Shown here: positions 49,160 to 53,451 of the stretch, one piece after another
Layout: each line of letters starts with the position of its first letter
Numbering within the stretch: position 1 is the stretch's first letter
From: Glycera tridactyla
Taxonomy: Eukaryota
Reading direction: 5' to 3'
NCBI GenBank assembly: GCA_965644265.1
Contig: OZ286461.1
Coordinates: forward strand, 114,886,001 to 114,950,000
Length of the DNA: 64,000 nt
Position numbers and translations under genes: made by a program
The notes under the pieces: generated by a model
The model's input: the letters and a program-made list of their open reading frames with translations, nothing else
Told to the model about the DNA's origin: nothing
Database searches by the model: none

Positions 49160-49304
49160 AGACAATCTGTATCGAGTCCCTGGGACAGATAAGCTGCCCA
49201 GCCCGAGGTACGCCGATTTTCGTCCGTGCCGAGGCTTTGCCGAGGCACGGACGAAAAAATCGGCGTACCGAGGGACTCGATACAGATTGTCTTTCTCACC
49301 CACC
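49160..49304. other. Branched cruciform (22-bp outer stem, ~24-bp inner stem) ending in the TTTCTCACCCACC motif
   Basis: AGACAATCTGTATCGAGTCCCT (49160-49181) is the reverse complement of AGGGACTCGATACAGATTGTCT (49271-49292). The inner stem GGTACGCCGATTTTCGTCCGTGCC / GGCACGGACGAAAAAATCGGCGTACC encloses GAGGCTTTGCCGA. There is a small side hairpin GGGACAG-ATAAG-CTGCCC. Confidence 0.85.
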
Positions 49305-50135
49305 ATAATGGCAAAAACAATCTTTTTATTGGCTGAATCGAAATCCCAAAATCCGCCATTCTGATGCTGAATCTGTTGTATCCATACATCATAAATTCAC
49401 CATATCACTACGCCTACCGACTTTTACATGGAGTCCAATGAGAACCGCGTAGTCGCCGTGGTCCGTAGTGAAAACACTACGCGCGCAAAACGTAGTTTCA
49501 AATTTCACCATCTCTTTCGAGGCCATTTTCATGCTTTTTCGTCGCCAAAAATACATGAAAACGATCATAAATTCCAGATTCACCAGAAAGAATGAAAAAT
49601 ATTGAATATTTAACGAATATTCGAGACGAATTACTTTTTCGCGCCACCCCCCGGCCAAGTCAGAATGGGGACCTCAAATTGTTTTGCAGACGCTCACCTT
49701 CGCGAAAAACACGTTTTTCAATGAAAATATGAAGAAATGGTGAATTCTAACACCAGTTGTAGCAAGATCCAGTTATTGTCTTTCGTTTTACATGGGGTAT
49801 GGCGTGTGACAGTGACTAAAAACGTATTTTGAGAGCGATTTCCGTGGCTTGTCAACTCGGAAAAAGAAGTTACCAAGAAGGCGAAAGGGATCACCTTCGT
49901 CATTTCTCCATGTAGACATGGTGGAAACCGCACGTTTTTCATGAAAAGTGGCGCATAGAAGACACCAACTGGCCAATATTTAGAGAGATGGTGATCTTAT
50001 CTTTCGTTTTACATGCAGATTTCTAGATGATAGGTCGTCTTGTCTTCATATTCGCGCGATTTCCGGGGCTTGTCAACACGAAAGAAGTTCCACCCAAGAT
50101 GGCGATCGCAATCATCTCCAACTTGCTTTACAAGT

Positions 50136-50452
50136 CGAAAAATACGTATAATGGCGAAATGAGGAGGAATCACTTCGAGCTAGTTCACGTGGGGCGAGAT
50201 TTCGATGTTTTCTTTCGTTATATACGCAGTTTGAGAGGTGATAACCAGTCTATTTCTTTGTTGGAGGCGAATTCCGTCGTCTGATAATTTGATTGTAGAA
50301 ATACCAAGATGGCGGTCGCGAGTTTCTTCATGCTGCTTTAAATGACGAAAAATACGTATAATGGCGAAATGAGGAGGAATCACTTCGAGCTAGTTCACAT
50401 GGGGTGAGATTTCGATGTTTCCTTTTGTTTTATACACAGTTTGAGAGGTGAT
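50136..50452. repeat. Direct duplication of ~107 bp (period 210 bp)
   Basis: CGAAAAATACGTATAATGGCGAAATGAGGAGGAATCACTTCGAGCTAGTTCAC...GAGAGGTGAT occurs at ~50136 and ~50346. Confidence 0.9.
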
Positions 50453-50539
50453 TACTGGGTTATTGGAGCTGATTCAATTCAGACAACTGATAGCCAGGGC
50501 TCCAAGTTTACCCCCCCCATCTCTCTCCCTCTCCCTCTC

Positions 50540-50575
<36 letters not shown>

Positions 50576-50804
50576 GATCTCATACCCTGATACCTGGTGG
50601 ATGAAATAAATTTCCTTGAATGAGGGTTGTACATGATTGGTTAGAGCTGTCTGGGTGATAGGTGATTATGGTAAATACAGAATCAAGCATAGAGTTGCTG
50701 TGGTGTTACAGTAAACAGTGCAAAAACATGATAAATATAACCTTGTCAAACTGATAACAGAATAGATATTTAACTGACACTCACAAAAGTTATCTGCTGC
50801 CCCT

Positions 50805-50838
<34 letters not shown>

Positions 50839-51132
50839 AAGATGGCCTCCAGCAACCTCCTCCCAAATTTAAAGATTAACTGTAACAGATGACGTAGAAT
50901 GAAGAAAATGCCTGAACTTACCCATCGACAACTGTTGCTCCCAATGTCCTAACATCAACTATTGTTGTTCCTCACTGTCATAACATCAACAACTGTGGCT
51001 CCCCAATGTCGTTACAATTTTCCGAACATCCTCCCTTGGTACCATTGTGATGCAAATGTTCCATCCATTGTCCAGGCGAAAAAATACATATACACGCATA
51101 TTTACACTATGTACACAAAGGCATACTCGCAG

Positions 51133-53100
51133 CTACTCCTGACTTGATTTGCTATCGGAGTAAATGATGCGCTTCACTCTCCGATAGCTTGACTGATGGT
51201 GTGTCACGTACGTGTTCTTCACAATGACTTGTTCGATGTTGCAGTTCTGAAACATGCTGGCACTGCTGCACATCTGCCGATTGACGGACACTTGCTGCTG
51301 CTTTGTTGCAACGGACTGACTGTTGGCAAACAACTCTTCGTTCTGTTGAATACGGATTGGTGACTGACTCGAATGCAGCTGTTGCCTTCCAAGTGGCTGA
51401 GGTACTTCATCGACGGCAATGGGACGAGATGGCTGGGTTGAAGGCATCGAGTGAAGGACTTGTGGAACTGTAGATGTTGGTCGTTGTGGAACTGTAGATA
51501 TTGGTCGTTGTGGAACTGTAGATGATGGTCGTGCCCAGTGCGAACATCCTGGGGATGGTGTTGATCGGTGAGATGGCACTAGCTGGTTCGATGGTCGGTT
51601 GTCTGAGAGGATATTGGATATGGTGCGCTGCTGGTTTGATGAGATTGAGCTGTAATTCGTTATTGAGTTCACATTTTTGTGTCCTGTTATTTGCATTATG
51701 TGGCTCGGTGGGATATTGTTATCGTTCATTTTTTGGATGGCATACTTCCTAGTCGAGTGGTTGGTGAGACATTTTCCGGTGTCTATTCCAGCATTCTGGA
51801 TCATCTTCTTCATGATGGTTGCTAATTTGGTTTTGCCGATGGGCTGTCTGATGAACCAAGTTTGGTTTGGTCCTGGATTCCGTTGAGTCGTGTTGACGGC
51901 TACATAAAGGGGATCGCTGGCATTACTGTACCCTTCAGGCCGCTTGTTGGCATACTGCTTGTAAGTTTCCACAGGACAGCGTTCTAAATTATCCGGCAGG
52001 GCATAGGCACCAGGACTGACTTTCCGTTGATTAGACACATCAGCACCTGTCCTGGTTTTTGATGCTCGTTCTGTGAATTCGAGGTATTCGCGATTCATGG
52101 TTGAATCGTAGCACAGTTCGATATCACCCCACATTATGCTTCGGTGTTCTCGACAACCTCCACGGCGACCAAACTGAACACGGATGATAAACCACATTGT
52201 ATTGATGATACTACTTGGGGACCAGCACCCAAGTTCTTTTTGTTCGTACAGGAGATCTATTTCTTGGTCTGTCAGTGCTTCCGCTTTCATGGGACCATTC
52301 CCCTTGCCTTGCTGCTTTAGATCTTTTTGTTTACTTTTCAGGCTTGACCTAGTCTTCACAAATGCATGGCCGGACACTAAGCATTCAGAATAGTTCTTCT
52401 TACTTAGGTATCGATTGAATGACCCCAGCATGCTACGTAGAGTCACCGGCTCATAATCACTTCCAGTCTTTGTTCGGACAACCATGAAGAACTTCGCAAG
52501 GTGTTCGTTCAGTTCACTGGGTGGAATGTTTTCCACCAGGCGATCCTCACCACCTGTCAAGAGATATTCTCGGAGGAGGTTCATGTGCCCTCTTGTTTTG
52601 TTTGCTGTCGACTCATTTTCCTTACCTTCAATGAATTCGTCGACTGTCTGATCCACTGCAGCGAATCGTCCTGGTCCTGACTCAATAGGCCTAACTGGTA
52701 CATTCATCACGGGGGAGGGCTCAGTCACAACAATGTCATCAACAAGATCAGCAGCTGCAGTGGCAGCATCTTCTACATCCATGGTATAATCAATCCCACG
52801 CGTGAACTCATCCAAATTGATTGATCTGAAGAACTCATCTTCATCACTGTCCAATGTGTCCATACCTTGTTGGCTACTCTGTGACTTTGCTGATTCATCT
52901 TCTTCCTCCAGAAGGTACCTGGCACATATCCTGACCAGCCCAGTATCAAGCTTGACTCGGTACTCCCGAAATCCCATTGGTGACTCAACATGTATAATAT
53001 TTCCATGGCCGATGACGACTCCAAGATGGTTTTTTAAGGCCACACGGGCACCAACTGGCAAAACTGATGCCATCCTGACAGGAACTGACGTCTGCTGCAC
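51133..53100 (-). CDS. Crypton-type (DUF3504/KIAA1958-like) tyrosine recombinase, intact single-exon ORF; first ATG at 53073 gives 646 aa
   Basis: Uninterrupted 655-codon ORF. Tyrosine recombinase motifs in order: FGRRGG (Arg), SKTRTG (Lys), LTNHSTRK (HxxR), ITGHKN (His), SITNY (Tyr). Family hallmarks: ENESTANKT, LAKFFMVVRTKTGSDYEPVTLRSM, RCPVETYKQYANKRP, WFIRQPIGKTKL and C-terminal FQNCNI. The ATG context is AGGATGG. Confidence 0.92.
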   Translation of the reverse strand: MQQTSVPVRMASVLPVGARVALKNHLGVVIGHGNIIHVESPMGFREYRVKLDTGLVRICARYLLEEEDESAKSQSSQQGMDTLDSDEDEFFRSINLDEFTRGIDYTMDVEDAATAAADLVDDIVVTEPSPVMNVPVRPIESGPGRFAAVDQTVDEFIEGKENESTANKTRGHMNLLREYLLTGGEDRLVENIPPSELNEHLAKFFMVVRTKTGSDYEPVTLRSMLGSFNRYLSKKNYSECLVSGHAFVKTRSSLKSKQKDLKQQGKGNGPMKAEALTDQEIDLLYEQKELGCWSPSSIINTMWFIIRVQFGRRGGCREHRSIMWGDIELCYDSTMNREYLEFTERASKTRTGADVSNQRKVSPGAYALPDNLERCPVETYKQYANKRPEGYSNASDPLYVAVNTTQRNPGPNQTWFIRQPIGKTKLATIMKKMIQNAGIDTGKCLTNHSTRKYAIQKMNDNNIPPSHIMQITGHKNVNSITNYSSISSNQQRTISNILSDNRPSNQLVPSHRSTPSPGCSHWARPSSTVPQRPISTVPQRPTSTVPQVLHSMPSTQPSRPIAVDEVPQPLGRQQLHSSQSPIRIQQNEELFANSQSVATKQQQVSVNRQMCSSASMFQNCNIEQVIVKNTYVTHHQSSYRRVKRIIYSDSKSSQE

Positions 53101-53422
53101 TGTTCTGCACTAAATTGTTCCTTTCCATGTGATTGGCTGATAAATTGCTGAATTTCCCTGGTTCTTGAAAGTAGTCCTGATCAGAAAGTACTACTTTCAA
53201 TTGTAGTAGATTTTTATCAATGGGAGGCAGATGCATAGAAATAGTTCTGGAACTACTTTCCAAATATGGTCATGGTCACTACAAAGTCCAATGAGTAATT
53301 GATTCTGATTGGCTAATATGGCTAGGCTGAAGACTAATTAGCCAATCACCACTTACCTTATTCCAAAAACCTTATCTTGTCCCACTGAGACAAGACAGGC
53401 TTGTCCTGTCCCAGCTGATCTA

Positions 53423-53451
53423 TTTCTCACCCACCGCAGGTGGGTGAGAAA
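53423..53451. other. Perfect palindrome TTTCTCACCCACC-GCA-GGTGGGTGAGAAA (13-bp arms), candidate recombinase site or terminal hairpin
   Basis: Read directly from the sequence. The stem extends imperfectly to GCTGAT...ATCAGC (53414-53462). Confidence 0.85.

Follow-up and report, generated by a model that had tools for sequence, protein, structure and literature searches.

What is the role of the short repeats that flank a tyrosine recombinase gene in the genome of Glycera tridactyla? The stretch of DNA analysed here, called the window throughout, is 64,000 nt long (assembly GCA_965644265.1, contig OZ286461.1, positions 114,886,001 to 114,950,000 of the forward strand). It holds a 29-bp palindrome, TTTCTCACCCACC-GCA-GGTGGGTGAGAAA, at 53423-53451, 350 bp upstream of the likely start codon of the gene (ATG 53073), and an exact same-strand copy of the palindrome's 13-mer at 49292-49304. 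An earlier note on this DNA had located both repeats correctly and had read them as att-like sites of a self-contained recombinase element, with recombination of the Cre or Flp type. In our analysis, the palindrome and the 13-mer probably serve for recognition of the ends of a CryptonA-type transposon that was active recently (49159-53451). We observed exact ends, no target duplication, a rule for the target pentamer, a terminal hairpin and an inverted pair of 13-mers that covaries among relatives. From the earlier proposal we keep that the motifs mark the ends of a tyrosine-recombinase element and are conserved across its subfamilies; exchange within the palindrome spacer had to be given up.

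Gene, ends and target of the element

The unit and its gene are delimited as follows:

49159-53451, gene on the minus strand: mobile unit, CryptonA-type transposon of 4,293 bp, delimited by alignment of copies and by diverging flanks.
51133-53073, minus strand: tyrosine recombinase gene, 646 aa from ATG 53073, identified by Pfam match and recombinase motifs.

The open reading frame (ORF) matched two Pfam domains, DUF3504 (PF12012, 1.9e-20) and Phage_integrase (PF00589, 1.1e-08). As listed, it covered 51133-53100 and opened at an upstream GTG (53100); the ATG at 53073 is the likelier start. The strings CRE, SKTRTG, HSTR and GH...Y were found in the window's protein as well as in five other copies, and the R..K..HxxR..H..Y set is intact in the window's recombinase, the roles of residues being assigned by inspection rather than by structural alignment. 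A search with the ORF among sequences of solved structures gave no match at E up to 1. The nearest database proteins were 37-50% identical, the named ones coming from the bivalves Mizuhopecten yessoensis and Pinctada imbricata; all these relatives carried DUF3504, and nearly all carried Phage_integrase too. Between the palindrome and the ATG, at 53280-53350, there are paired inverted CCAAT boxes (GATTGGCTAAT ... ATTAGCCAATCA), likely the promoter.

The recombinase is the sole long ORF within 49159-53451; the remainder consists of tandem repeats and microsatellites. Neither reverse transcriptase, nor RNase H, long terminal repeats (LTRs) or another transposase was seen in the unit, its small ORFs being outside the Pfam scan. 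The unit belongs to CryptonA, the tyrosine-recombinase DNA transposons of the DUF3504 lineage (Kojima & Jurka 2011, PMC3212892; Krysinska et al. 2026, PMC13465315). The genome contains at least 20 near-full copies with 93-99% identity and unrelated flanks, and the full-length ORF is kept in 10 of 19 near-full copies (L002-L020); such copies mark the element as young and recently active.

The right end of the unit is formed by the palindrome itself:

53423-53435, plus strand: inner palindrome arm (a), exact copy of the 13-mer, delimited by comparison of right ends.
53436-53438, plus strand: spacer GCA, replaced by GAA in one subfamily.
53439-53451, plus strand: outer palindrome arm (b), GGTGGGTGAGAAA, whose last base is the element's last base; its final AGAAA is invariant.

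One and the same 13-mer occurs in three exact copies in 64 kb, while ~0.002 would be expected per further copy (2 x 64000 / 4^13). When the assembly (2.04 Gb) was searched for the 29-mer, 82 sites were found at no more than two mismatches, versus none for a reversed control. Similarity to the window ended on the right at 53451 in every copy. In all 32 distinct right ends the palindrome was whole at one end, with flanks unrelated from the first base after GAGAAA; the terminal AGAAA was present in 31 of the 32, and the inner side was conserved within subfamilies. Enrichment at element ends, named in the earlier note as a check, thus holds for the palindrome. Its core was kept in subfamilies that are ~70% identical in ORF DNA, and it varied only at the first two bases of the inner arm (TT, CC, GT, TA) and at the middle base of the spacer.

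At one locus, L020 (G000:C7:129396291-129404341), two Cryptons of different subfamilies are arranged tail to tail through one palindrome; in reverse complement, the right flank of one element matches the interior of the other (1,047 bp, 91% identity). This single case could reflect a rare recombination at the palindrome, or a collapse of two adjacent palindromes.

The palindrome can be read as 13-bp arms with a 3-bp spacer or as 11-bp arms with a 7-bp spacer, the sequence alone being compatible with both. One could suppose a loxP- or FRT-like core, with crossover in the spacer (3 or 7 bp) and with the direct 13-mer at 49292 as the partner, so that a circle of ~4.1 kb would be released. Inverted arms next to a tyrosine recombinase gene, a spacer specific to subfamilies (GCA or GAA) and the L020 pair, which is what a crossover inside the palindrome would give, all fit such a core. 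However, crossover in the spacer would split the palindrome between the two ends, and none of the 32 right ends showed this; the mobile unit takes in a hairpin and 133 bp outside the 13-mer at 49292; and relatives in other taxa have no palindrome. The 'degenerate partner arm' proposed to start at 49305 matches the arm in ~4 of 13 positions, which is the chance level, and the sister subfamily differs there save for a CAAAAAC run. As the palindrome is unsplit and the hairpin lies inside the mobile unit, exchange does not take place in the palindrome spacer, and the loxP-like core seems to us highly improbable. A look-alike at ~50915 matches in 8 of 12 positions and falls outside the set with up to two mismatches; on present evidence it is not a site.

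At the left, similarity among copies begins at 49154/49155 in most of them, and alignments place the break at 49158|49159, 133 bp outside the 13-mer. Copies therefore break after 53451 and at 49158|49159; the breakpoints at direct 13-mers or in the spacer that the earlier note had anticipated were not seen. Left flanks were read for the window, L038, L024 and one contig of run X8; the others were assessed by the coordinates of matches and by searches with short motifs. A short sequence resembling the element's own terminus adjoins the left end on the outside:

49154-49158, plus strand: pentamer AGACA, of the RGAYA class, with 11 forms among copies.

Does the pentamer come with the element or from the target? 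The copy L038 (L038:1501-1849) is a 344-bp derivative that keeps both termini and is inserted inside a high-copy repeat; the region from the hairpin loop (49238) to 53194 is lost, which appears to be one in-situ deletion with a breakpoint in the loop. In 13 paralogues of the repeat, the matches to the left and right flanks overlap by exactly 5 nt, and these 5 nt align to both AGACA and AGAAA at the element ends; four more paralogues show a 2-nt gap, consistent with the same pentamer. Thus, the insertion added 339 bp, without duplication, to an empty site with one pentamer. A target-site duplication was found neither in paralogous empty sites nor in 123 left ends.

Left ends of the window type (n=58) carried AGACA (20), AGATA (13), GGACA (9), GGATA (5), AGAAA (4) or other pentamers (7). 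The RGAYA class made up 47 of these 58 and 54 of the 65 sister-type left ends (81-83%), with 11 forms in each family; at least 16 bases that follow the pentamer were almost invariant. The pentamer at 49154-49158 is probably target-derived, with microhomology to the terminal AGAAA. On the simplest reading of these ends, the element would insert 3' of a pentamer of the RGAYA class, similar to its own AGAAA, with exchange at AGAAA|TA.

The left flank of another copy (L024:406-563) is a ~160-bp repeat with at least 3,800 candidate copies, and the consensus of this repeat continues through GGATA and ten bases matching the Crypton left end. No recurrent insertion into the target repeat was seen beyond L024 itself. 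In the sister family, an inverted 29-bp palindrome directly adjoins the left end in 3 of 40 scored copies; one of them, L052:1330-1529 (G000:C39:12134606-12134886), has 39-bp perfect terminal inverted repeats. For window-type left ends, a search for an adjacent GGTGGGTG arm gave 3 near matches genome-wide, which is about the chance level; thus, there is neither general insertion beside such an arm nor formation of head-to-tail dimers.

Terminal hairpin and the inverted 13-mer pair

The left end reads TA and then passes into a secondary structure, which occupies the 133 bp up to the 13-mer:

49160-49292, no strand assigned: imperfect terminal hairpin, ~131 nt, one arm being branched, seen in the DNA fold and in self-matches.
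49292-49304, plus strand: 13-mer (c), TTTCTCACCCACC, adjoining the inner hairpin foot; inverted partner of the outer palindrome arm.

The predicted fold has an energy of -59.7 kcal/mol (z = -13.9, none of 200 shuffles being as good), and opposite-strand self-matches were present at the hairpin in every copy. The first base of the 13-mer, T49292, closes the hairpin with A49160. In the sister subfamily (palindrome starting with CC or CT) the hairpin is 165 nt long, diverged in sequence but homologous (z = -21.1); the identical 13-mer is situated one base past the hairpin foot, though both the stem and the other flank differ. The idea that the hairpin is a separately inserted miniature inverted-repeat transposable element (MITE) was rejected, since the hairpin is present in all families and taxa.

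The 13-mer and the hairpin foot also bear a relation to the two termini. The bottom strand of 49304-49283 reads as the arm directly followed by GACAATCTG..., an arrangement that recurs in copies; joining 53451 to 49159 would give the outer arm, TA, and then GACAATCTG.... The 13-mer with the inner hairpin foot therefore repeats the closed junction in inverted orientation, except that the two bases TA are missing, and the same two-base asymmetry was observed in the sister family. Since TA is the sole difference between this copy and the junction, the two ends, once joined, would make up a single long, imperfect palindrome. The minimum-energy fold predicted for the junction in this genome has the outer arm paired to the inner palindrome arm instead of the 13-mer at 49292; one could speculate that the inner arm is thus a competing or regulatory partner.

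Are these features kept outside Glycera? We compared nine loci that encode relatives of the recombinase (from Pinctada, Mizuhopecten and the ENA). A long hairpin, ~130-260 nt overall, was present ~200-750 bp after the stop codon in eight of the nine; at L069 there was no hairpin in the part of the locus that the contig covers. To assess the coupling of the two ends, the 900 bp preceding the ATG were compared with 70 nt around the inner hairpin foot for their best inverted match without gaps, with 300 shuffles as a control. At seven loci the best match was a motif of 13-26 nt, reached by 0-3 of the 300 shuffles, with the upstream copy 160-255 bp before the ATG and the downstream copy at the hairpin foot. 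At L068 the match was 12 nt long and offset, being situated ~600 bp upstream of the ATG on one side and 18 nt away from the hairpin, which it did not reach, on the other; the match at L066 was a low-complexity A/T run and was not counted.

The motifs themselves differ by taxon: ATCATGTGATAAA in Pinctada, TTCATGTGATAAA in the ENA relative L067, ATTATATAATAAA in Mizuhopecten and a 26-mer in the ENA relative L061. Between Pinctada and L067 there is a paired change at one position, the partner in L067 being altered correspondingly. The two copies from Pinctada diverge right at the edge of the 5' motif; those from Mizuhopecten, also two, share 99.6% identity over 2,160 bp, up to ~4 bases inside the outer foot of the hairpin. 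When closed junctions of Pinctada and L061 were folded, the hairpin was lengthened by the motif pair. The second (inner) arm is absent from Pinctada and L061, and none of the other relatives compared has one. What is conserved, therefore, is the inverted pair together with the hairpin, and the perfect palindrome is a further development in the families of this genome. In this comparison the functionally coupled pair appears as the outer arm with the inverted 13-mer at 49292, a pair kept in relatives that have no palindrome; the direct 13-mers, which had been suggested as partners, are replaced in this role.

The presence of inverted repeats near both ends (the outer arm and the 13-mer at 49292) might recall a cut-and-paste (DDE) transposon, with the 13-mers as its terminal inverted repeats and the recombinase gene carried along as a passenger. 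There is, however, no target-site duplication and no other sizeable ORF in the 4.3-kb unit, one of the repeats is 133 bp away from its end, and the same layout accompanies DUF3504 recombinase genes in other taxa; we give this explanation practically no credence.

One may also ask whether the palindrome and hairpin are recombinase sites at all. They could be structural by-products of fold-back replication or repair, or could act as a transcription terminator or insulator: template switching can produce palindromes, the inner arm is lineage-specific, and the hairpin is prone to deletion, as in L038. Against this, every copy has the motifs exactly at its termini; subfamilies with no more than ~70% identity in the ORF still share them, and the motif pair and the hairpin are retained with changed sequence in other taxa. 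We regard such an origin as very unlikely.

If the motifs are end-recognition elements, as we prefer to think, the following course of events can be envisaged. The 646-aa recombinase would bind the 13-mers, and excision would join 53451 to 49159, producing a circle of 4,293 bp (in place of the ~4.1-kb circle between the direct 13-mers expected earlier) with the junction AGAAA|TAGAC, reading ...GAGAAA and then TAGACAATC.... A recombinase monomer on the outer arm would cleave at the edge of the arm, AGAAA|TA; tyrosine recombinases normally cut at arm borders. The cleaved strand would be exchanged with a target cut after RGAYA, so that the left junction would retain the pentamer of the target and the right junction that of the element. 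Either replication or another exchange at that position would then complete the intermediate. A variable pentamer at the left and an invariant one at the right suggest a single fixed exchange point, one phosphodiester, and are compatible with exchange of a single strand followed by replication.

In plain duplex, ~135 bp separate the outer arm from its partner; extrusion of the hairpin or folding of the strand would reduce this distance to 2 nt. This leads to a more specific form of the preferred reading, which we hold only tentatively and consider rather unlikely as it stands. The outer arm would pair with the 13-mer at 49292, closing the long imperfect hairpin and bringing both termini side by side; one strand would be exchanged at AGAAA|TA, and replication would complete the process. 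Recognition of the target pentamer may occur through pairing with TTTCT of the 13-mer. Put more generally, animal DUF3504 Cryptons might move via a folded intermediate (a single strand or an extruded cruciform), with ends paired through the 13-mer and its complement at the hairpin foot and with a single strand exchanged at the arm edge, next to a target defined by the pentamer; to this general form we assign the same low confidence.

Several features are in line with a folded strand. The two motifs are exact complements that covary across taxa; stem sequence and length differ between families while the feet are conserved; the 2-nt asymmetry at the junction is the same in both families; products are one-sided, as seen from the variable left and invariant right pentamers; position 1 of the pentamer is A or G, either of which can pair with T; and the folded junctions of Pinctada and L061 gain stem length from the motif pair. 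On the other hand, a single protein that recognizes the two motifs as inverted terminal sites would lead to covariation just as well; C or T, preferred at position 4 of the pentamer, is unable to pair with the opposing T; the minimum-energy fold of the junction here prefers the inner palindrome arm; and no single-stranded intermediate was observed, nor is a replication function encoded.

The end-recognition reading as a whole also meets with difficulties. Cleavage at the arm edge with a partner ~135 bp off matches no characterized tyrosine recombinase site, unless the hairpin is extruded. At position 4 of the pentamer the C:T ratio is 32:20 in window-type ends versus ~15:44 in the sister family; given this family-specific bias, simple derivation from the target is insufficient, and part of the pentamer may be inherited like a coupling sequence. 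A fully resolved empty site is available for only one insertion, L038. At L024 the identity with the target runs 10 nt into the left end of the element, making the exact exchange point ambiguous there. Finally, no circle-junction or excision joint was seen in the sequencing runs, which at contig level are uninformative on circles and empty alleles; these runs look like low-coverage DNA and are uninformative on expression as well.

Repeats within and beside the element

Part of the unit outside the gene is a repeat array:

49764-50464, no strand assigned: internal tandem array with a ~210-bp unit, ~3.3 units here, recognized by repeat families and by several offset matches per copy.

The number of units differs among copies, and the array carries AAGATGGCG motifs. 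In three runs containing the element, contig depth was ~300-3,600 over 50092-50439 versus ~5-20 over the gene; with a depth so far above that of the gene, the array repeat is far commoner than the element. In run X3 (organism B), contigs under a second species label covered 49446-53247 of the window, 20 of them at 99% identity or higher; thus, the family is common to two labelled organisms.

The right flank, 53452-54900, is a long minisatellite of GATGAC-rich units of 18 and 24 bp, which gives rise to spurious ORFs on either strand, the longest having 488 aa. Long (GA)n/(CT)n tracts at 48060-48500 and 50511-50581 produce 60-nt inverted matches that span the left element boundary; these matches were rejected as a structure of the element, being a simple-repeat coincidence.

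Comparison with known systems

How do the ends described here compare with those of known Cryptons? The element has in common with them a single DUF3504 tyrosine-recombinase gene, the absence of reverse transcriptase and LTRs, the lack of a true target duplication, the existence of non-autonomous derivatives and a short terminal direct repeat (here AGACA ... AGAAA) that reflects target microhomology. In fungal and oomycete Cryptons the terminal direct repeat is 4-6 bp and represents target microhomology (PMC3212892, PMC13465315); the microhomology model is known for fungal Cryptons and for Starships (PMC13465315). In animal Cryptons, a survey of 2011 found no terminal repeats, direct or inverted (PMC3212892), so that target microhomology, or a short direct repeat, at the ends of animal Cryptons is something not previously found. 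The difference lies in the structured ends: the 29-bp palindrome, the ~131-nt hairpin, the covarying inverted 13-mer pair and the RGAYA target pentamer. Neither 'hairpin' nor 'palindrom' occurs in PMC3212892 or PMC13465315, and full-text literature searches, which did not extend to subscription journals or Repbase reports, returned no description of such Crypton ends.

With Cre/loxP and Flp/FRT the element shares a tyrosine recombinase and 13-bp inverted arms. The native FRT site has a third element, and the nearby third copy of the arm recalls it. The differences are that exchange here would occur at the outer edge of an arm, that the spacer is 3 bp if the arms are 13 bp, and that the palindrome is intact after integration.

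Folded single strands are substrates for tyrosine recombinases in two bacterial systems, integron attC with IntI and CTX-phage attP(+) with XerCD, where single-strand exchange is completed by replication. The likeness extends to an imperfect hairpin (~60-165 nt), conserved complementary feet, a variable centre, unpaired bases and one-sided products. In contrast to attC and attP(+), the element here is eukaryotic, its foot is completed only when the ends join, and its recombinase is of the DUF3504 group.

IS200/IS605 elements (e.g. IS608) have hairpins at or near both ends, no classical inverted repeats, no target duplication and an HUH Y1 transposase. They resemble the present element in inserting 3' of a short specific sequence similar to the element's own end; the difference is that here there is no HUH (Y1) transposase, and an integrase-fold DUF3504/Phage_integrase recombinase is the only protein.

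DIRS retrotransposons combine inverted terminal repeats with an internal complementary region (PMC13465315). Here, too, an internal stretch (the 13-mer with the inner foot) is complementary to both adjoined termini and a tyrosine recombinase is encoded; however, long inverted terminal repeats, reverse transcriptase and RNase H are absent, and the complementary region is part of a terminal hairpin. Since the unit has no ORF for reverse transcriptase or RNase H, it is not a DIRS element.

As far as searchable papers go, transposition of a Crypton has not been shown experimentally; with no terminal repeats in the animal survey, there was no defined substrate to test until now. The locus supplies an intact 646-aa gene, base-exact ends and candidate cis elements (the 13-mer pair, the hairpin and the pentamer) backed by covariation across several taxa. 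Assays of binding, cleavage, excision and integration can be designed directly from it, and annotators can use the structure of the ends as a signature to locate the boundaries of Cryptons. If the folded site is real, tyrosine recombination in the single-strand style would be extended from bacteria to animals; the element would be a eukaryotic counterpart of attC and CTX-phage recombination, a compact recombinase with a structured and possibly re-targetable site.

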